A DNA stretch of 62,076 nt, filler included, from Hydrolagus affinis (Eukaryota): the NCBI GenBank assembly GCA_012026655.1. It is 4 parts of 4 records of this genome, joined end to end, with 100 filler letters (N's around TTAATTAATTAA, not from the genome) between each part and the next. Parts side by side here need not be neighbours in the genome. Positions count along the whole stretch, not along the records: positions 1 to 12,942 come from JAAILG010021190.1; 3 more parts are not named here. One strand, 5' to 3'. Below are positions 1 to 12,942 of this stretch, one piece after another (positions within the stretch are counted from its first letter, which is position 1; each line of letters opens with the position of its first letter). The notes below the pieces were generated by a model that was given only the letters and a program-made list of their open reading frames with translations, was not told where the DNA came from and searched no databases. The position numbers and the translations under genes were made by a program.

Positions 1-170
1 CCGCTCCCCATAGCCTAATAGACCTGTTCTCCCTAAATAAAGATCTAATTCCCTTTTAAAAGTTGTTATCGAATCAGCCTCCACCACCTTTTCAGGCAAT
101 GCATTCCAGATTCGAACAACTCGCTGAGTGAAAAAATTTCTCCTCAGCTCCCCTCTACTTCGCCTTGAAA
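1..170 (-). mobile_element. CR1-type LINE 3' end fragment
   Basis: Reverse complement of the CR1 3' segment also present at 11370-11500 (gttgttcgaatctggaatg...cctgaaaag-tggtggaggc...ttttaaaaggg-a-tagatctttattta). Confidence 0.7.
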
Positions 171-399
171 CAATGATGTTGTGGATGAGGTTCAGGTTTG
201 CTTTTGAGCTCTGCTATATCTTGAACAATCCTCCCACAACCTTTGGGACTCTCAATTTGGCCATCTTTGGATTCACTGGAATTTTGCTGTCCCAAATTTC
301 CAGAAGGAGATTGGCATTAGCCTCATTTGCAGAGCCACCATGTACTGTATATAGATTCACATGTTTGTCCTGAGGCTCATCTTCTCCACAGATGAACAC

Positions 400-720
400 A
401 ACCCAGAAGCCTGCATACTTTGGGTGGCTCTGTGAGTCACTCCGGTTCCACCTTGCGAAGCAAGCAATACATGGAAGGAACTTCTATTGCCCATTTCATG
501 GCTCCACAGTGGGCACATATATTTGACATATTCCCAATAGGATGGGTAGTCTCTACCTGAATCATAGTTGAGCACAACTGAATGGAGTGACCTCTGCTGC
601 TGAGCGCCATTTTCCTGTTTTCTGTCCTGCTGGGCTGTTCTTTTAGTGGGCAACTCATTTTGCTGTGATCTTGCGCTTCTTTCAGGATTGAAGTCGTGTC
701 GTGCTGATGTTTGAGCACGC
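400..720 (-). mobile_element. Degenerate Helitron-like Rep/helicase N-terminal fragment
   Basis: ORF 437-766(-) contains PIGNMSNICAHCGAMKWAIEVPSMYCLLRKV, resembling the IGxMxxxCxxCxAxxWxxExxxxCCxxGKV motif of Helitron proteins; frameshifted and truncated. Confidence 0.5.
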
Positions 721-3363
721 AATTCATTATGCCATTATTTGTATACCTTTCTGTGTCCAAGTACAACCGTGATGTTCTTTGTTTATCAGTTTCATTTACT
801 CATCCTTCTCTTTTTCACCTGGCATTTTTATTTGTCCTTGAAAAGCTTGATCTTCACTTCTTGGAAATTTTATAAAAATGTGTGATTGAACTCGTACAGA
901 CAGTATTATGTTTGATGTCATGTAATTCTCTTGTGTTACAGTAACACACATTTTTGTATTGTCTCATGAACAATTGTGGATACAATTGGCATAGTGTTTG
1001 TATGCTCATTTTTAGTTCTGGGATTTGTCAGTGAAGCCACTCATAAACTACTTTACATGCTGTAAACCCTGTGTGCACACCTTAAGAAAATCTGCTACAC
1101 ATGTAAAGCAAAAGGTGATGATCTTTTTTAGGTCATAGGTCATCAACGATAGGATATCTTCCTTAAAAAAAGTCCAAGACCTTTCCAATGAGGTACAAAA
1201 TCATGTATTTATGTCGATCTGTTATTGTGTTATTGGCAGACAGACATACAGATAGACATTCCATCTTTATTACTATAGATTTAATTTAGAAACACTTTCA
1301 GGTAAAATAACCATTTTTAAATATTGAAGCAAAAATACCACTAACTTTGATTATATAAATGTATATTGCAATAATAACTTCTTATTACCAGTTTCCCTCT
1401 GATAACACTTTATAAAACCAGTTTGTAATCACTTTAGAACGTATATAGTTCACCAATCTTCAACTGAGAATTTTAGCTTAGTCCTTTAGACATTTCTTTG
1501 GAAAATCGCTTATGTGTTTTATATTTTGGTTCAAGATTATGCACCCAATATCAATGTCAGCTTCTGCTTGAGTTGCTCTGTGTGTAGTTATTTATTATTG
1601 TTTGAATGTCATCAGGAAAACATATTTACATATAAACATATCTTATTAATCTATGGCATTTCTATGATATTAACTTCAATGTTCTTATTTAACCAATGAG
1701 GATACTGTGAAGTGCTCTGAAATGTCTGCATGATGCGATAAGGTAATAACTACATGAAATGCATGGATTATTATTCTTTATTAAATGGTTGATTGAAAAG
1801 TTGCACTGTTATATCAATTGCTTTTAAGCAGATTACATAGTTTTATTGGTACTTATGTTATAGTTTCAGCCATGTTTGTATAAAGCATTCATAGTTAGAT
1901 TTTAAGAAATTCTAAGATTTGGATTAAATCGACCCAAACTGGCTTCCCCAAAATGCTCCCGTCTGTAATTTTGTTGTTGTTCTTCTAAACATGACTTGTT
2001 TTTAAGCAATGAAGTAGCATAATAATGCCTAACCAACCAGTAATATATTCTTACACTTCTTTTATAAAAATACAGCAACAACAAGTTGCATTTATGTAGA
2101 ATATTTCAAGTCAGAGGGATATTATCCCAAGGTAATGAACCATCGAGGATTTGCAACTGTCCCAAGGTTTGGGAGGAGAAGGGGCCGATGAAAGTGTGGG
2201 GTTAAGCAACTGAAACTGTGACCAAAGTCTTGAGATGGACCTTGAATGAGTTGAGGGAAGGTACAAGGTAAATGGACTTCTGGTTGGCGTTCCAGAGAGC
2301 GGAAGCAGACAGACTGAAAGCCCCACTGCCGTTCGTGCCACAGGGAGCATAAAGCATGTCAGTACTTGCTGATCTGATGGAAGGTCAGATTATTATGGTT
2401 CAAGAAGGTTGCAGAGGTGGTGGGGATAGAGGGGTAAGACGGTGCAGCGATTTAAAATTGAAGATGAGTATCTGGAACTCCTCTGGGGGATGGGGGCCAC
2501 GTAAGGATGGGAAGAAAAGGTAAAGTCGCAAATATGTACAGTTATGTTTGAGATATGCGAGATTGACAAAGCAGGCCTGATATGATCTATATCACAGAAT
2601 GGTACCAACATACAGCAATCAGCTTCCACCTATGTTGTAGCATTCTGCTACGGTTGGTTCCTTGTATGTGGTCTGTTGTGCTGCTGCGTGCTTTCTCACG
2701 TGTACCTGGGCATACTCTGTTTTACTATCATTGCATTCAGGATTTCTCTTTTCCTTTGTGTTGGAGCCAGACAAGTTCAAATTTGTATATGTCAACATGT
2801 TACCGGCTGCTACTTGTTTGGTCTGTAAAGATAAAGGTTGAGATTTCAGTTACTAATTCATTTTGTCAGCATTTAGAAATCTCGAGTAACTATTTAAAAC
2901 TTCGCACCCTATTTCTCATCCAGTAAAGCACCACTCAATGCTAAACTCAGATTTATAAAGCCAGAGATCCCAGTCATCAGTCTCCTTTTTATGCCGTGAT
3001 AAATGCAAATAGAATTGGTATCTCTTAGTTTGTGGGCAGTGTTAATTGGCCAGTGAGAAGTGGTTATTAATCTCACTATGGACATATTCATTCAATTGGT
3101 GATCTCTCCAGTGTCACATGTTTTGCTATACTAACTGGCTCATCTGACACATGAAGAATGATTATTTGGACTATTTGTGCACTAATTTGCAAAAGAAACT
3201 GAATCCAGACAAGCGTCTGAGGAGAGGAAAAATTTTAGGAGGAGGTAAAACTGTTGCATTACACAATCAAGTTTATTCTAAAGAATAAATGTCAGTTTAA
3301 TTTTATGTAATATAGCAGGATATCATATTAGTTATAAAGGGTGTGTATCATGATTGTATGTAC

Positions 3364-6300
3364 CTTAGCACCTACTGCCATTTCCTGTGGATGTGTTTTC
3401 AAATCAGATGGGACATATCCCACCGTCGCATACATTGTTTCATGGACTTTCTGTAAAATACACGGTGAGGTTACTTGGTTGGTTCCTGGTCTTCACTGGG
3501 CTCCACTGTTGGTTAAGCAATGCAGTATCCAAATATTAATTTGGAACTTGAAACTTGGCTTGTTATATAATCTGCGGGGAGACCGGCTAAATGCAATGAA
3601 TCTGTATTGGAGACCCAGATACAGGTATCCGTTCATCTCTCACCAAACCTCGCATTCAGTTGGGCCTGAAAGGAGTCGAGGAAGAGTCTTGGACCTGTAG
3701 TTTACTGTACCTCAAAGTACAGCTAATATTTTCAGGCCCATTTTAAACACACTGCTCATGTCTGTGCATTAAACATCATATAATACAATCCCATATTTGT
3801 TTAATGTACAAATCTCAGGCTATTGAAATAGAAATAAACATCAGCAGCTACATTTCAAATACAGTATTAACATATCACTTGCATCGTTTTATGCATATTT
3901 ATGCAACAGTGCTGTATTGCACATTGTGCCATGTATTAAGCATATCGATAGCTTAGGGGGAATATATGAATGACACAGTGAAGGGGACAAGAATTGTAAG
4001 AAATAGAAGAGAATAAATGCAGCATTCGATGTTAACAATGGTAAGAATATCCAGTCCCTGTTCAAAATATTCGGACGTCATTATAGCACCAAGGATCTTA
4101 TTCAATCATAACACAGAAACATCTTCTTGAGTTAAATCTGTACTTTACCTGATCTGTACAAATGTCAGATCCATTCAGCTTCCTGTGTGATCCTGAAATG
4201 CAAGAAATTCAAAAAGTGAAATGTGTGGCCAATTTCCAAGTTGTTTATATTCCCAGGAAACAGGTGAATGAACGCAAGTGATTTGGTTGCCCAAGAGCTT
4301 TCTGGGACACTTTATCAAATATAAAACAAGGTGCAGGACAAGGGCAGCATCAATCTTCCTTTACCATTAAATGTAAAATAATTTAAAACATCATGTGTTT
4401 TTGGTGAGCCTGGTATTTGACACATGGAGAAACACCAACCTAAAATATATCCAAATTAGGCTGTGAGTTCCACTTTTGTATAATTATAATAATAATAATA
4501 ATAATCCTTGCATTTGATATAGCGCCTTTTCATGTCTTCTAGACATCTCAAAGCACTTCACATGATATACTGTAAAGTGAATTGACTGTACATTTGTGGG
4601 TGAAAAGCAGCAGTCAAATGCGCAAAGCAGTGTCCCACAAACAGTCGTTTGTGGGATTGCAGGTTGGTAAGAGGATAGGAGGTCACGGATGTAGGGTGGG
4701 GCGAGGTAGTGGAGGTCTTTAAATATGAGGACCAGGATCTTGAATTGGATCCTCTGGATGATGGGGAGTCAATGGAGTCAGGCAAGGATGGGGGAGACGG
4801 GATCACTGAGTTTGCAACGGTAGAGGCACGGGCCGCAAGTTGGTGTCGTTATTTTTATTGTGTTCATGACAGGGGCATTGATAAAAGACAATGAGAACAA
4901 CCAGAGTGTATTTTGCTCCTTCTCAGACTGAAAAACGACATGAACTGATTATAATCCCTTTCTATCTATATTTCCAACCTGATTTCCTGCTTGATGTGTC
5001 TTGATTCAATTTTTAAAATGAAACATTTTTGATGTCAGATTTTGCCAGAATATTTCTGCAATACTTACACCCACTACTATTGTAAATGCCACCAAACAAG
5101 ACATGTTTGATATAAATTCTAAAATTTCTATATGCACTTTTCTGCCAATACTTGAGATATTCGCTGTACTTCTGCTGTAAACAAACATCTAATTAAATTC
5201 ATCAGTTTAGTCTTATCTATTTCTAAATGCGATGTAAATTGCAGTAAAATAAATTGCATTGGTTTATTCTTTATCCTTTAAATCACTTCAATGGCCATGC
5301 CAACCAGGTACCTGTTAATCTACTCATTGAAGTATTAGATTAAAGTAAAAATAAAATTTAAGTCTGATTAAAACCTTAATATGTCTTACCATTCCGTTTC
5401 ATAAATCGACATGATATTCCAATGACTAAAAGCACAAGAAATGTCAATCCTGCACATCCAGTTACCTGTATTAATTTATCAGTATTATTTCCTGTAATGA
5501 CAATACAAGTGTGAAAAGGTAAAACAGGAGTACTGTATTCCATTTAGTGATGTAAGCAGAATTTACCAATGACTGTGAAAGACGCTATGCAAATCTAATT
5601 TGTTGTTGAAGATGCATAAGTAAAGAGACATAATAGTAAATAATAATAACCGTTGAATAGCATGCCTTTCACATTGGAAACATGTCTTCCAATGTTTCAC
5701 AGGATATATTGCAAAGTAGATAGTAAAAACTAGATTTGATAGAAAAATATAAATATGTTTGCATGGGAAGCCTACGAGGACATTACCTAATTTGTTGTAA
5801 TTAATACCAGGAAATATTCTTGTGAAAAAAATAAAGATTAATTGACAATTAGCGGCTTGGGACATCCTCCTGATATTAAAGGCGCTTTATAAATGTAATT
5901 TTGTTGTTGTTATTAATATTACAAGTAGACCCTGCTTAAGAAAAACAACAACTTGGATTTGTATGGAGCCCTCCATGCTGAATGGCATCTCAGAGCGCTT
6001 CCCAATAAAGGATCCCGGGGTGGGGCAAGGGGAACAAGGTGAACAAAACTGCAGTCAAAAGGAAAGGTCTGAGACCTGAAAATAGGAAAGGAGGGGGCGA
6101 GGTGAAGGGAGTGAGGGAGGGAGTTCAGAGCCTCTGGGCGTAGTGGCTGAAAGTACGGCTGCCGATGGTGGAGCAGAGGATTTGGGAGACAAGGAGGAGG
6201 CCAGACCCGGTAGAGTGAAGCTAACGGGTGCTGTTGTGAGGGGAGAGGAGGTCAGAGAGGTAGGGGGGTGCAGAGGAGTGGAGGGATTTTAGTACAAGCG

Positions 6301-9300
6301 TGAGGATCTTGAAATTGATCCTCTGCGGGACAGGGAGTCAGTGCAGTCTGGCAAGAACAGGGGTAATCGGGGAGCAGTTTTATTCGGGTGAGAATGCAGG
6401 TGACGGAGTTATGTAGGAGCTGGATTTTGTGGATTGTGACGGAGGGGAGACTGGCAAGGAGGATGTTTGAATAGTCCAGCAAAGAGGTGACAAAGGCATC
6501 GACCAGTGTTTTGGCAGCTTTTGGGGTTAGATATTGGTCGAGACGGGCGATGCATCGGAGATGGAAGACGGCAGTGCTGGTGAGCGACTGGATGCGGGGG
6601 AGGAAGGATAATTGGGGATCGAACCTGGTGAACGTTGTTTTGTTGCTTCGGTCAACATTGTTTTATTATTACGTTGCTGATACATAGGGAATATATAACT
6701 ATTTAACGATGTGACATTCGCTATTGCGTCGTTCACTAGCGGGTGGAAACGAACAGGGCAGGCAGTCAGGGAGCAAGAGAGTGAGCCGGGCAGGTAGTCA
6801 GGGAGCAAGTATAATTTTTTTTAGAACATTTTCATGAAAAATGTCCAAAATAACCTAACTCCAGTTTATACATTAATTTATATCGGAAAAACAGGTTTGC
6901 TTAATGTCGTACTTCTCGAGAACACAACTACAATGTTAAACAAGGAATAATTGTTATTATAAACGGACGGCTGGATGCATCCATGGAGTCATCTCTGAAT
7001 TACAGCACATTTCAGTGAAAATGAACAGGCAAATCTGCCCTCATCATATGATAGAAATAAAATATGGGATCTACCTCAGCTCGTAAACACACAGAAAATA
7101 TAATCAGATTGTGATAAAATATTTGGGTGAGAAACAATTAACATTAATTGTCAATAAGATTGTTGGCATCCTACCTGTGTTGGAGAACTGAACTGTGTAC
7201 AGGTAATTGGCAATTTCTGGAATCTGAAGGCTGATGTGAGAAACCTGACAGATATAAACAACCTCACTTTGGACAGTCTTGTTCTCTTCCACAAAGCTTG
7301 AAGCTTCATACAATCCCTCTGCATTTTGCTGTTTAGTGATGTTTATTCCAGATGTAATTTTGGTGCCATTTTTATACCAAGTGAGGTTAAGATCCTCTGG
7401 ATAAAATGCAGTGGTTTCACACACAAGAGTCAGAGGCGAAACTATTTTAGTAACTTTGGAGAAGATCTTCAGTGGAGTTGGAGGAACTGTAGAACAATAA
7501 CAACAAAATTACATTTGTATAGCGCCTTTCACGCCAAACAGTACAGAAGAATTGCAAAAACTTACAATCAATTGGTGGAGATTAAACTTTATTATGATTT
7601 TCATTTTATTCCGTTCAATACAGCATTTTGATTCTGGTTCATTTGCTTTGTATTTAAACAAGTCCAAGCTGGACAAAATCTTTTTCATTCTATGACTGTT
7701 TGTGGGACATTGCTGTGCACAATTGGCTGCCATGTTTTGTCCACAGATATGAGGTCAATTCACTTTATAGCATATTCTGTGAAGTGGATTAAGATGTCTG
7801 GAAGACGTGAAAAGCCAAATGCAGGGATTAGTATTTTTAAATATTTTGTTCTAACTTTGATTTGTTCGCCATTCATGACAACTATATAAGTTGTTATGGG
7901 AAAGATACTTTGTCACTACAGTTCCCCAAAAAGCAAATAAATATACAATGAAAAGCCAGCACAAAATGTCAGTGAATGTCTCAATTTTCACTAAATAAAA
8001 TATTATTTTCCATAATTCCGATTGCCTCTCCCCATTAATACAAATTTATCTTTTCAACTATCCCATAAATGGAACTGGAGTAATAAGAAAAACTTGATTG
8101 TTTTACAGTTACAGATTTAAAATCCAGAGAAGATAATAGATTTCAAGCAATATCCTGTAGATGTGATCACGGCAAAGTAGCCAATGCTGATATGCGCTAT
8201 TGGTTTCCTCCTCAGTAAGATGAAGAAATAGTTAATTACTGATATTGTATTTAACTAAGTATATCTAACAGATGACTGAAATTGATTTGAATAAAAATAT
8301 GGGCTTGAAATTGTCTAAATCTTAATTCATTTAAAAAAAATCCTTATACTGTATTTGATTGTGATTTTGAAATGCCTCAAATGCACATCACAAGTGTTTT
8401 GAATGTGCAATTTTATCTGGAGACAGATATAATTGATATGTTCTTCAGCACACCAAGAAACTCTTCTCTCTGAAAAGTGTCATTTTTTTAACATCAATCC
8501 CATTCTGCAGACTGGATATTGATCGTATCCAAATAAAGGCACTTCTGGAAATGCAAAGCTCCCCGACATTCCTGCCCAATACTCTAGCATGTGCTTCTCA
8601 AACATATGGAGATATACAACATTCAGTTATTTAGTAAAGTTTTTTTTTAAAGAGACGTTTTGATTAACCAGTGGTCTGATACGCGCAGTAGAAGAGTATC
8701 CAAAACCAAACCATGTATCCACCCACATGTGGAAATTCCCATGTATTGGAATGAAATGTGCACTGACTTTCCAAACTGACCCATCCCGCTTTTTGTAATT
8801 CCACAGAGTATTATGCAATTGCTAGCAAAACCAAAGCTTGGGGATCCCTGAGTGTTTGTTGGGTATTGTTGGAATCTAAACAGCTAAAACCCCTTATCTT
8901 GCCAACGAGAGCACTATCTCACAAGCTTTTCCCCTGTTTGTCCATTGTGGACAAGTATAAGAATTATGGGTTTGACTTGCAGGGTTAACAGAAGCTGAGT
9001 GAGAACAATCCCTGCCCCTAGAGACTCCTCTGCCTCTCCAAGTCCTGCTGATCAGCCAGGCTGGCTGGGCTGTCCTCAGAAGTGCCTTGGTTCAGGAACC
9101 AGAGAATCCCACAGCTATCCCACAGGGTTGACCTATTTCTGACATTCTATTGCAAGCATGTTACCTGGGAGATAGTTCAGTTCCAAGCAGATCCCACCTC
9201 CCCCCAGGAGGATACATTTTAAAGGACAACATTTTGAAACACCCATTTCATATTCCTAAAATAATTCAACATCTTTTATCCTTTTCTACAATTTTTGGCA

Positions 9301-9864
9301 CCATATCTAATTTGGAATATTCCATACCTACCCCACACAATCAGCTGTGATCCAGGTCCACTGGCCACTAATTTTCCCTCAATCATGAGGGCACACTGAT
9401 ACACACCAGAGTCCTGGTGACTCACATTTAGGAGCTTAAAGAAGCTGCTTTGTTTGCTGTCAAACCCAAACAGTTTTCTTTTATCCGGTTTCGTATGCAG
9501 GTATCCATTGTCTTCCTGCTTCCACCAATACACTTTTGTACGCAGGTTGGGTTGAGTGTCAGGAAACATGCAGTGAAAGGTAACGTTAGTGCCTCTAATT
9601 GCCTCCACATGGTCGGGGAGTTGGGTCACTCTGGTCATTGTACCATCAACAACTATCAGAAATAAATTCAAATGCAAATTAGAAACAGAATTTAGTACGC
9701 GAGACAAAGTAATGCGAAGAGACTTATTCTATCAATAAAATAATATCAAATTATGTCATTTATCTCACTTTTTGACAAATTGTGGTATAGAAGGAGCACA
9801 TACCTGTGAAAATTATCTGGATTAGATGTACACATAGAAACACAAAGCTCACCAACATTCTCAT
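3364..9864 (-). CDS. Non-rearranging IgSF receptor: leader - V domain with germline-joined J-like motif - C1-set domain - TM - cytoplasmic tail with candidate ITSM (VJ-C1 type)
   Basis: Phase-compatible GT-AG exons: leader 9804-9864 (MRMLVSFVFLCVHLIQIIFT); V 9332-9652 (VTQLP..HC..VYWWKQ..DSGVYQC..SGPGSQLIVW); C1 7175-7486 (LVCETTAFYPEDLNLTWYKNG..YICQVSHISL); TM 5390-5491 (GNNTDKLIQVTGCAGLTFLVLLVIGISCRFMKRN); cytoplasmic 4149-4192 (SHRKLNGSDICTDQ) and 3364-3450 (KVHETMYATVGYVPSDLKTHPQEMAVGAK). The first four exons are strongly supported; tail exons and the true 3' end are less certain. Confidence 0.85.
5935..6630 (-). mobile_element. L2-like LINE 3' fragment
   Basis: ORF 6252-6482(-) LDYSNILLASLPSVTIHKIQLLHNSVTCILTRIK resembles the L2 ORF2 C-terminus; tail with (gtt)n. 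Confidence 0.7.
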
Positions 9865-9930
9865 CGTGGATTGAGACCAAGGATGAAGCTATTATTGCTC
9901 ACTATTAAGTAATTACGGTTGTTTTAAGCA

Positions 9931-9964
9931 TTTATATATAAGGCAATGACGACTGACTTCCTGT
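9931..9964 (-). promoter_or_regulatory. Putative promoter of the VJ-C1 gene (TATA box plus ETS site)
   Basis: Minus strand reads ACAGGAAGTC (9955-9964, ETS core GGAA) then TATATAAA (9931-9938), about 70 bp upstream of the ATG at 9864. Confidence 0.5.
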
Positions 9965-10569
9965 CTCTGTAAGTTTAAACGATTGGCTCTGAGTGTTTGA
10001 TTAGATTTACAAAGACAGTTATCCACTTAAAAGTTGATTACTTTCAGTTATTTAATTGACGACAAGGTCTAAACTCCATCTGAAAGTAACACTCAAAGTT
10101 TATTTTGATGTTATTGTTTTTACACTTTTTACCAAGGGGAACTAACTTTTCAATCCAAACTCAAAGAGTTGTACTTCATGTCAATATGAATCAGGGCAAA
10201 TTTCATGTTTCTTCCAAGACCTTGCTTTTCGACCGTGTCGTCGATCGGTCACCCACCTTCCCCCACCACGTCATCCATATATCATCCCTGATCACGACCC
10301 CATCTCAGATTCCAAGCAAAGTGCCATGGGACATCTTCCCAATGCGAAAAGTGCTATACAAATGTAATTTTGTTGTTGTAAAATGATTAGTATTACATCA
10401 CAAGATCACAGAATTAATTATGTTAAAGAAGGTCTGATATCTTCTTTCCAAATCATCAACAACAATAATGACAGTAAACAACAACAAAAGACTTAACTGG
10501 CAGTTTGACTGCTTTAAACTTGCACTCCTCCCATAATAACATCAATCTTTTTTTTTAACTAATATTGGC

Positions 10570-11600
10570 TGCTTTTCAGACTGGAGGGAAGTGTGCAGTG
10601 GCGTCCCCCAGGGATCAGTTTTGGGACCACTGCTCTTTTTAATATACATTAATGATTTGGATTTGGGTTTAGGAAGTACGGTTTCCAAAGTTGCAGATGA
10701 TACTAAGTTAGCGAGAATAGTAAATAGTGAGGAGGATGGTAGCCATCTGCAAGAGGATATAGATAAAATGGTAAAGTGGGCAGACACATGGCAGATGAAG
10801 TTTAATACAGAGAAGTGTGAGGTGATACACTTTGGGAGAAGAAATGAGGGGAGCAATATAGGCTAGATAGTACAATTTTAAAGGGTGTGAAGGAATAGAG
10901 AGACGTGGGGATTTGTGTTAGTGACTCTTTGAAAATGGCAGGACAGGTAGACAAAGCCGTAAAGAAGGCATATGGGATACTAGGCTTTATAAATAGGGGT
11001 ATAGAATACAAAAGTCAGGAAGTGCTGATTAACCTTTATAAGACTTTGGTTAGGCCTCAGCTGTGTACAATTCTGGTCACCACACTTTAGGAAGGATATT
11101 AAGGCATTGGAAAGGGTGCAGAGGAGATTTACTAGGATGGTACCAGGAATGAGGGACTTCAACTATGAGGAAAGGCTAGATAGGCTAGGCTTATTCTCTC
11201 TAGAACAAAGAGATTGAGAGGAGACCTGATAGAGGTTTATAAGATTATGAGAGATTTCGACAAGGGTGAATAGGGAAAGACTGTTTCCACTGGTGGGCGA
11301 ATCAGTGACTTGTAGTCACGGATTAAAAATAGTTTCAAAATGAAGCAGAGGGGAGCTGAGGAGAAATGTTTTCACTCATCGGGTTGTTCGAATCTGGAAT
11401 GACTTGCCTGAAAAGATGGTGGAGGCAGATTACATAACAGCTTTTAAAAGGGAACTAGATCTTTATTTAGGAAGGGCGGGTCTGTTAGGTTATGGGGAGA
11501 GAGCGGGGCAGTGGGATTGAGTTGCTCTGTTTAAAGAGCCGGCACAGACTAGATGGGCCAAATGGCCTCCTTTTGTGCTATATAATTCTATGGATATCAA
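10570..11600 (+). mobile_element. CR1-type LINE reverse transcriptase 3' portion (degenerate)
   Basis: [64 protein letters not shown] and a CR1 3' UTR; frameshifted. Confidence 0.9.
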
Positions 11601-12079
11601 AAAGTTGATTTCCTGCACACAATGCCTCTGCAATCCCAAACTATGGGATGAATTACATTCCACAATCCCTTCACCTTGCTCGAATCCCTTCAAGGCTGGT
11701 CTCAAGACCCTCCTTTTCGATAGTGCATTCAGCAGTCATCCTACCTCTCTGCCCTCCCTCATCCAAACTCTGCCCCCGCAACACCCCAACCTCCAAATTT
11801 TTGGATCCCCTGACTGTTCAGTGTCTTGGGACATACTTCTGACATGAAAGGTGCTCTACTGATGTACTTTTTTGCTGTTGTTGTTACTTGTCTGTAACAA
11901 GGGATTGCAATTTCTTGACTTAAAATTGTGGGTGATGTTCAATATCATGTTCATGCTCATGCCTATTTTTGTTTTGGGAATGGCTTGGACAGGCAGTTGT
12001 CTACAACAACACAATTATATTTGTAAAGCATCCTTCACATCTACTTAAAGAGCAACTAGAATCTCATGTCTTATTGTCA

Positions 12080-12675
12080 ACAAACAACAACAACAACAAA
12101 ATTGCACTTATAAAGCACCTTTCATGTCAGGAGGACGTCCCAAGGCGCTGAACTGTCTGGTCGGGACCCGAGCGGGGTGCAGGAGGGTCGGGGGAAGGGG
12201 AAGGAGAGTGGGAGAGGGGGAAGAGTTTGTGGGGCAGCCGAAGGCGCGGTCGATGAGGAAGGTCTTGAGACCGGCCTTGAAGGAGGAAAGGGAGGAAGCG
12301 AGGCGGGGGGTACAGATGGAGTTCCACAGTGTGGGAGCAGAGAGGCTGAAAGCCCGGCCGCCGATGTTTGGGCAGTTAGGGCAGTGGATATGGAGGCCAG
12401 AGTCTGCTGAATGGAGGGTGCGCGCAGGCTGATAGGGAGACAGTAGGTCAGAGAGACAAGTGGGGGCAAGGCCGAGAATGGCCTTGAAAGTGAGGACAAG
12501 CCTCTTGAATTCTATCCTCTGGGTGACGGGGAGCCAGTGGAGATGGGCGAGGGTGGGAGTGACGTGGTCGCGAAGCCTGTTACGGGAGTGTACACGAGCT
12601 ATAGAATTTTGAATGCGCTCTGAGATGCAGTCCGGCGTGGAGGGCGCTATATAAATCAAAGTTGTTGTTGTTGAA
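12080..12675 (-). mobile_element. L2-like LINE 3' fragment
   Basis: ORF 12108-12659(-): [46 protein letters not shown], with L2-type tail and (gtt)n. Confidence 0.85.
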
Positions 12676-12799
12676 TGATCTGCAGCCTGTGAAGGGAGGA
12701 GCTGGGGAGACCGACGAGGAGAGAGTTCCCGTAGTCAACAAAGATGAAATCTAAATTGTATTTGTAAGAAATACTCAAAGTTCGTTTAAAAAACCACAA

Positions 12800-12942
12800 A
12801 TGAATTGGTGAGGCCTCAGCTGGAATACTGTGTTAAATTCTGGTCACCACACTACAGAAAGGATGTGAAGACATTGGAAAGGGTACAGAGAAGATTTACT
12901 AGGATGGTGCCAGGATTGAGGGACTTCGGCTATGAGGAGAGG
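12800..12942 (+). mobile_element. CR1-type LINE fragment truncated by the assembly gap
   Basis: [45 protein letters not shown]. Confidence 0.85.

Follow-up and report, generated by a model that had tools for sequence, protein, structure and literature searches.

What kind of receptor does a cartilaginous fish encode when a variable (V) domain and its joining (J)-like strand share a single exon that is followed by a C1-set constant domain? The immunoglobulin (Ig) and T cell receptor (TCR) genes arose when the RAG transposon split a precursor gene, and non-rearranging VJ plus C1 genes are candidate relatives of that precursor. The window analyzed here is a 62,076-nucleotide (nt) stretch of DNA from Hydrolagus affinis (NCBI GenBank assembly GCA_012026655.1), in which four parts of four records are joined end to end. 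The locus lies in the first part, a 13-kb piece (positions 1–12,942, from JAAILG010021190.1), where an initial annotation, made from the sequence alone, had described a germline-joined V-J and C1 receptor. At this locus the holocephalan (chimaera) has an intact gene, encoding a type I membrane receptor, that probably belongs to a family of SIRP-like paired receptors, of V(J)-C1-transmembrane layout, that would signal via SHP phosphatases. Its own standing is modest, as it is one more predicted inhibitory paralogue of a family that is already annotated and inconsistently named.

When the minus strand was read as its reverse complement, candidate exons assembled into seven exons with an open frame of 376 amino acids, and every intron had AG/GT splice sites (Table 1). 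The second exon encodes a complete V-set domain, which Pfam recognizes with E = 1.1e-8, together with the final residues of a split leader. The F-strand motif DxGxYxC (QDSGVYQC), a CDR3 (third complementarity-determining region)-like loop and the J-like strand GPGSQLIV share this exon, with no intron between V and J (the C-terminal stretch is YQCALMIEGKLVASGPGSQLIVW, also quoted as QDSGVYQCALMIEGKLVASGPGSQLIVW). A scan of the whole piece for recombination signal sequence (RSS) heptamers and nonamers separated by 12- or 23-bp spacers found none at ≤1/≤2 mismatches, and the single match near the V exon at relaxed settings is on the antisense strand. The V-set fold, the strand F and G motifs and the one exon lacking RSSs are all as defined for VJ-type V domains. 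A model made with AlphaFold2 (AF2) from the family alignment is a confident Ig fold (predicted local distance difference test score, pLDDT, 91). The SGPGS stretch in the J-like strand (9348–9362) is without an N-glycosylation sequon; most family members have one there (GNGTGS).

To this extent the initial annotation was accurate: the coordinates of the V exon were exact, no RSS or intron separates V from J, and the C1-set, transmembrane and tail exons follow in compatible phase. The range that it gave to the gene, 3364–9864, was too short. Position 3364 is the donor end of the second cytoplasmic exon, and the last exon (2822–2619) had been missed; we located it by tblastn with the tails of the family proteins P0013, P0010, P0005, and P0021 (E down to 1e-7). 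Similar tblastn alignments matched the leader exon with the leaders of P0011 and P0013 and aligned cytoplasmic exon 1 with GSHGVVNGSD of P0013 and GSHKEINGSH of P0007. Using 12 family proteins as tblastn queries, we found no second C1 domain between 5491 and 7175 or elsewhere in the 13-kb piece. Nor does this piece contain a neighboring gene; the adjacency to C-beta that the initial annotation had reported is an artifact of joining the parts end to end.

The C1 exon matches the Pfam C1-set family (E = 2.6e-11), and its AF2 model, also based on the family alignment, is a confident Ig fold (pLDDT 90). Three hallmarks set strict C1-set domains apart (Hatherley, 2009): the BC loop opens with (F/Y)(F/Y/H)P, the Cys of strand B is separated by 13 residues from the Trp of strand C, and the Cys of strand F is followed by xVxH. 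All three are found in this exon, as FYP, C-ETTAFYPEDLNLT-W (exactly 13 residues) and CQVSH. In per-domain HMMER comparisons with the PDB, the best sequence matches of C1 were the d2 and d3 domains of SIRP (33.1 bits for SIRP-gamma d3, 29.5 for SIRP-alpha d3, and 27.4 for SIRP-gamma d2), with a C-lambda domain below them at 25.6 bits. UrIg2 was also among the top matches, with an E of 2.4e-14 that is summed over three C domains. When Atlas clusters were ranked by language-model features, "SHPS1 phosphatase" was the second-nearest named cluster of C1. The C1 domain thus leans to SIRP, although not firmly.

The transmembrane segment (LTFLVLLVIGISC) has zero charged residues. The tail contains an immunoreceptor tyrosine-based switch motif (ITSM)-like TMYATV in exon 6 and, in exon 7, the immunoreceptor tyrosine-based inhibitory motif (ITIM) LTYTNL, which is followed 19 residues on by the ITSM TEYAQV. 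The exon 7 pair aligns with LTYAAL...TEYAQL units of homologues, the tails of which contain the unit [L/V]TYA[A/T]L...[T/S]EYA[Q/E][L/I/V] one to four times. This pairing resembles the human SIRP-alpha units ITYADLNL...TEYASIQ and LTYADLDM...SEYASVQ. With an ITIM and ITSMs in its tail and no charge in its transmembrane segment, the gene reads as an inhibitory innate-type receptor, of the functional kind represented by SIRP, NITRs and LILRs. Other family members, P0117, P0073, P0129, P0019, and P0076 among them, have short tails (7–40 residues) and a Lys or Arg within the transmembrane segment; these are probably putative activating partners that use DAP12-like adaptors. A Cys at the boundary between ectodomain and transmembrane segment (...GCAGG...), present here and in about half of the family members, could form disulfide-linked dimers.

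Is the gene transcribed as predicted? We mapped reads of three polyA single-cell RNA runs (X2, X3, and X4) to positions 1700–7699; the leader, the V exon and the leader–V and V–C1 junctions lie outside this interval. In X3, the bins that overlap the C1, transmembrane, second cytoplasmic and 3′-terminal exons were covered (Table 1), with pure intron bins at or near 0 (at most ~1.1). X2 and X4 were near zero on the transmembrane, second cytoplasmic, 3′-terminal and lower C1 (7100–7299) bins. This exon-restricted co-variation in X3 supports co-transcription of the C1, transmembrane and tail exons. As the first mates of the X3 reads in exon bins were on the plus strand only, the RNA would come from the minus strand, an orientation that holds for most stranded libraries. 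DNA words of the locus occurred in one run only, X1; its contigs are colinear with both exons and introns and ~2.5% divergent, and X1 is therefore DNA-like and silent on splicing. Reads from all three single-cell runs also fell at 3500–3899, in the intron between the two cytoplasmic exons, at depths of ≤11 (X4) and with G>A at 3631 in every read. Their probable origin is a repeat, or else a transcript, paralogous or unrelated, of another locus.

Table 1. Exons and motifs of the Hydrolagus affinis receptor gene, with RNA read depth in run X3. Positions are those of the window.
Feature	Position	Strand	Content	Phase and splice sites	X3 depth (bin)
Leader exon	9804..9864	(-)	ATG 9864–9862; encodes MRMLVSFVFLCVHLIQIIFT plus 1 nt	phase 1 at 3′ end; donor gtatgt	
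V(J) exon	9332..9652	(-)	321 nt	phase 1-1; acceptor ...gatag, donor gtaggt	
J-like G-strand motif	9336..9359	(-)	GPGSQLIV (GxG[S/T]xLxV), within V exon		
C1-set exon	7175..7486	(-)	312 nt	phase 1-1	67.6 (7100–7299); 129.8 (7300–7499, where the other runs show a repeat background of 35–50)
Stalk and transmembrane exon	5390..5491	(-)	encodes GNNTDKLIQVTGCAGLTFLVLLVIGISCRFMKRN; aligned to family transmembrane segments (tblastn)	phase 1-1	17.6 (5300–5499)
Cytoplasmic exon 1	4149..4192	(-)	encodes GSHRKLNGSDICTDQ	phase 1-0	
Cytoplasmic exon 2	3364..3450	(-)	encodes KVHETMYATVGYVPSDLKTHPQEMAVGAK; ITSM-like TMYATV	phase 0-0	4.2 (3300–3499)
Last coding exon	2619..2822	(-)	ITIM LTYTNL 2795–2778; ITSM TEYAQV 2720–2703; stop TGA 2621–2619		
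3′ end					22.6 (2500–2699)

The gene is one of many. With the V exon as query, phmmer was run exhaustively on 1.84 billion representative proteins and returned 204 matches at E ≤ 1e-3, 71 of them at E ≤ 1e-10, a likeness far greater than chance would give; the top single-domain match was Callorhinchus milii P0003 (73% identity). Dozens of proteins of 260–400 amino acids share 33–55% identity in V, and local BLAST found that nearly all of these also have the C1 domain (31–63% identity) and many the tail. The family layout is V-C1-transmembrane-tail, with V-C1 present in most of the proteins. The shared signature is a leader, a V(J) domain ending in GNGTGSxLxV, a C1 domain with PPTPLKI...FYP...TWYKNG...CxVSH, a transmembrane segment and either an ITIM/ITSM tail or a short tail. 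The gene in the window fits this signature, being 33–73% identical to members in V and 31–63% in C1; neither phmmer nor the homologue searches found a protein identical to its product. The seven-exon structure, the V-set and C1-set identity, the absence of RSSs, the family membership and the tail motifs are established.

How widely is the family distributed? Names were looked up for 30 proteins, and all 24 of the named single-V family matches (33–73% V identity) are from cartilaginous fishes, of the genera Callorhinchus, Scyliorhinus, Mustelus, Heterodontus, Heptranchias, Hemiscyllium, Chiloscyllium, Leucoraja, Amblyraja, Hemitrygon, and Mobula. Word-indexed homologue searches, which returned only chondrichthyan family members and one VCAM, add Stegostoma and Carcharodon. 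The few non-chondrichthyan proteins that were checked are weaker matches, with at most 32% V identity and without the family C1: squamate pIgR-like, obscurin-like, otk-like and uncharacterized proteins, and one Takifugu TCR V-alpha. The commonest RefSeq/NCBI name in the family is [quoted passage not shown] (PTPNS1-like, that is, SIRP-alpha-like). Other members are automatically named "SIRP beta-1-like," "immunoglobulin lambda-1 light chain-like," "tapasin-related protein-like," "NCR3 ligand 1-like," "class II histocompatibility antigen beta chain-like," "CD276 antigen homolog," or "uncharacterized." These names are mutually inconsistent. The practical value of the present analysis lies in a correct gene model that includes the ITIM exon and in drawing attention to names that need curation. 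Our literature searches found no published description of a chondrichthyan V(J)-C1-transmembrane family and nothing specific on SIRP-like genes in cartilaginous fishes or sharks.

To place the gene within the family, we built a maximum-likelihood tree of the V-C1 region (72 rows, quick search, with Shimodaira-Hasegawa-like approximate likelihood ratio test, SH-aLRT, support only) that left out the redundant cluster members P0151–P0164 and P0167–P0170. The gene is sister to C. milii P0172 (SH-aLRT 96; 64% identity over 210 columns) and falls in a subclade in which every identified member is a chimaera sequence. Sequences of chimaeras and elasmobranchs are mixed in other deep subclades, so the family is older than the chimaera/elasmobranch split and has expanded separately in each lineage. 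Its occurrence in chimaeras, sharks and rays, as a large family of probable paired receptors with strict C1-set and VJ-type V domains in a TCR-chain-like layout, shows that the diversification of SIRP-like V-C1 receptors had already taken place at the base of the jawed vertebrates. On C. milii scaffold MU249845.1, family genes occur at ~15.22 Mb and at 15.63–15.66 Mb, ~400 kb apart, and at each of these two sampled places another C1-set gene lies inside the 10-kb flank. Among 45 aligned members, mean pairwise identity is 36% in V versus 42% in C1, and entropy peaks in the CDR-like BC, C′C″ and FG loops. Such variability of the V loops is as expected for a diversifying ligand-binding V domain.

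These features are most simply accommodated if the gene belongs to a SIRP-like paired-receptor family. As in SIRP, the V domain does not rearrange, has a J-like G strand and precedes true C1-set sequence and a single-pass transmembrane segment, and a putatively inhibitory member with ITIM-type tyrosines stands beside short-tailed members with a basic transmembrane residue, a pattern like that of the paired receptors that include SIRP-beta, which acts with DAP12. To these are added the PDB matches of C1 to SIRP d2 and d3 and the SHPS1 cluster.

Several observations weigh against this assignment. The ectodomain of SIRP consists of V and two C1 domains, whereas here a single C1 exon lies between V and the transmembrane exon, and the family is so far known only from cartilaginous fishes. 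The V domain also lacks a specific affinity to SIRP d1: no SIRP d1 was among its top 60 PDB matches by HMMER (nor was the V domain of UrIg2), and by sequence it has no SIRP likeness. The top rank went to pIgR D1, with a domain score of 24.6 bits and a whole-chain E of 1e-9; PD-L1 came next, and TCR and IgNAR V domains were far lower. When the V model was compared by Foldseek, CD79b, NKp30, CD8-beta, TCR V-beta and V-alpha, and Ig V-kappa led, at 17–25% identity, and the nearest Atlas clusters were "putative Antigen receptor (Fragment)" and PD-1; it is a generic VJ-type V domain. For C1, Foldseek placed the beta2 domain of major histocompatibility complex (MHC) class II first (E ~1e-7, 25–30% identity, template modeling score, TM-score, 0.78–0.82), and SIRP was not within the top 30 matches. 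These structural comparisons confirm the folds, but the scores of all C1-set and VJ-type families differ by less than an order of magnitude, too little to discriminate among them. PDB searches with family profiles were dominated by multi-domain proteins such as titin and Ig heavy chains, and since their domain scores are summed, these rankings are unusable for choosing the nearest family.

The read data add further reservations. Predicted splice junctions, which the initial annotation had proposed to check by RNA sequencing, were not readable, as the table of joints was saturated by false joints between intronic copies of short and long interspersed nuclear elements (SINEs and LINEs); the exon-restricted depth is the part of that check that was obtained. 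At 2691–2703 the depth in X3 was only ~2, so that RNA support is weak where the last exon encodes the ITIM and ITSM. X1 lacks 10 nt at 2703–2712 in this exon, which changes ...TEYAQVHV... to ...TEYT-stop and would remove the last ITSM and 24 C-terminal residues; the deletion could distinguish alleles or species, or it could reflect a problem of the assembly. Together, the low depth and the deletion suggest that the distal tail may vary or be dispensable.

If the gene is a SIRP-like inhibitory receptor, how might it work? The membrane-distal VJ-type V domain would bind ligand through its CDR-like BC, C′C″ and FG loops, the positions that are most variable among paralogues. The single C1 domain would serve as a spacer and may also be a pairing module, and the boundary Cys, which many members have, could link two chains in a disulfide-bonded dimer. 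Ligand binding would be followed by phosphorylation of the TMYATV, LTYTNL and TEYAQV tyrosines by Src-family kinases, and the phosphorylated tail would recruit the SH2-containing phosphatases SHP-1 and SHP-2, so that activation would be dampened, as it is by SIRP-alpha. The family as a whole could then be a paired activating and inhibitory system with birth-and-death evolution of its tandem arrays.

Large, fast-evolving tandem families that combine inhibitory (ITIM) and activating (charged transmembrane) members, with VJ-type V domains, are familiar from teleost NITRs, LILR/KIR and CD300/pIgR-like receptors. pIgR shares with our gene a V-domain likeness, since its D1 is the best single PDB sequence match of V. 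However, NITR, CD300 and pIgR are without the bona fide C1-set second domain that is present here. A pIgR/CD300-like receptor was rejected, as the likeness is in V only and those families have no C1. Identity as a tapasin-related protein or an MHC class II beta chain was also rejected, because the automatic names that suggest it rest on C1 alone.

Neither domain groups firmly with one known family, and a second reading, which we regard as unlikely, is that these genes, which do not rearrange and resemble TCR chains with a single C1 domain, form an ancient lineage of their own, in which a conserved boundary Cys could link chains into disulfide-bonded dimers and which is as close as SIRP or UrIg to the pre-RAG ancestor of antigen receptors, or closer. 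The gene shares with TCR chains and membrane Ig light chains the order leader-V(J)-C1-transmembrane, phase-1 exons and a membrane-proximal Cys, and its V fold is closest to VJ-type V domains. It differs from the rearranging Ig and TCR genes in that V and J are contiguous with no RSS, and from TCR and Ig chains in its uncharged transmembrane segment, its ITIM tail and a V domain that is only ~20% identical to theirs. If this reading is correct, the family would be a membrane-bound, signaling-competent model of the pre-RAG antigen-receptor ancestor.

The stronger claim, that the gene is a direct surviving relative of this ancestor, nearer to TCR and Ig than SIRP, NKp30 or UrIg are and retaining the original V(J)-C1-transmembrane layout, is quite unlikely in our judgment. 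The layout of a TCR chain is matched exactly, with a split leader, a VJ exon, one C1 exon and a transmembrane exon, all in phase 1; the structural neighbors of V are VJ-type domains, and the Atlas cluster nearest to V is a putative antigen receptor. The age of the family would also suit such a relative, and the homologue searches found no close counterpart beyond cartilaginous fishes. However, the likeness of V to Ig and TCR V domains amounts to 17–25% identity with E-values no better than those of CD79b or NKp30, C1 is nearer in sequence to SIRP than to C-lambda, the charged residues through which TCR chains assemble with CD3 are missing from the transmembrane segment, and the tail is of the ITIM type. 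The 13-kb piece gives no usable linkage for such a reading.

The candidate role of precursor relative is, moreover, already filled by UrIg2. [quoted passage not shown] Like our gene, UrIg and UrIg2 have a single-exon VJ, a split leader, C1-type domains and no RSS, and they are found in cartilaginous fish, namely elasmobranchs (Flajnik et al., 2025). Unlike it, UrIg is a liver-secreted protein with three C domains, UrIg2 has 9–11 C domains, and each is described as a single gene with no ITIM tail described, whereas the gene studied here has one C1 domain and an ITIM tail and belongs to a large tandem family. The precursor argument of the initial annotation was thus not new, as it had been made for both SIRP and UrIg/UrIg2, and the gene is not a singular one, as it has dozens of paralogues across cartilaginous fishes, nor precursor-like in its ITIM/ITSM tail. 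Its description there as a lymphocyte receptor gained no support from the present data. What survives is the antigen-receptor-like VJ-C1 layout. The annotation had named firm grouping with SIRP or B7-H6 as the result that would count against it; the affinities that we found are mixed and weak, and a special tie to the RAG-invaded precursor was not demonstrated either. A literature search for "PRARP," a name that it had used, found no immunological paper.

Could the protein instead be a ligand? Several family members are automatically named "NCR3LG1-like" or "CD276 antigen homolog," B7-H6 has the top TM-score (0.87) among the Swiss-Prot Foldseek matches of C1, and the V domains of PD-L1 are weak HMMER matches of V (E ~4e-4), all of which would fit a B7/butyrophilin-type ligand (B7-H6/NCR3LG1-like or CD276-like) with a V-C ectodomain recognized by an NKp30-like partner. 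We nevertheless consider this very improbable. The V domain has a canonical J-like G strand, and its structural neighbors are receptor-type VJ domains and not B7 V domains. C1 carries the strict C1-set hallmarks, which are absent from CD80 d2 (Hatherley, 2009), and the occurrence of ITIM/ITSM tails alongside short-tailed members with charged transmembrane segments is a signature of paired receptors.

Germline-joined Ig genes are known in cartilaginous fishes, and some family members bear the automatic name "immunoglobulin lambda-1 light chain-like," but it is barely credible that this is an Ig light-chain or TCR gene joined by RAG activity in the shark germline, and hence derived and not never-rearranged, given its transmembrane exon and three-exon ITIM tail, a V domain only ~20% identical to those of Ig and TCR, WWK in place of WYQQ in strand C and GNGTGS in place of FGxGT in the family G strand, the absence of RSS remnants, and dozens of paralogues with the same fused VJ in all chondrichthyan orders sampled.

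The 13-kb piece is also rich in repeats. Intronic SINE and LINE copies at 4484–4648, ~5700–6900, 7493–7699 and 7679–7839 had enormous read depth in all runs; copies that are 77–91% identical occur in C. milii loci, and the SINE family is common to both species. A motif resembling an open reading frame (ORF; ...HWLPV.QRI.FK.L.L.FK...AP.YL.DLL.PY.P.R.LRS...) is repeated on the minus strand at ~4558–4806, 6252–6482 and 12108–12659. Fragments of a LINE reverse-transcriptase ORF lie on the plus strand at 10570–11293 (VPQGSVLGPLLFLIYINDL...) and 12805–12942; the latter is truncated by the end of the piece, and the former matches, with 72% DNA identity, sequence that lies upstream of a family gene in C. 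milii (L002).

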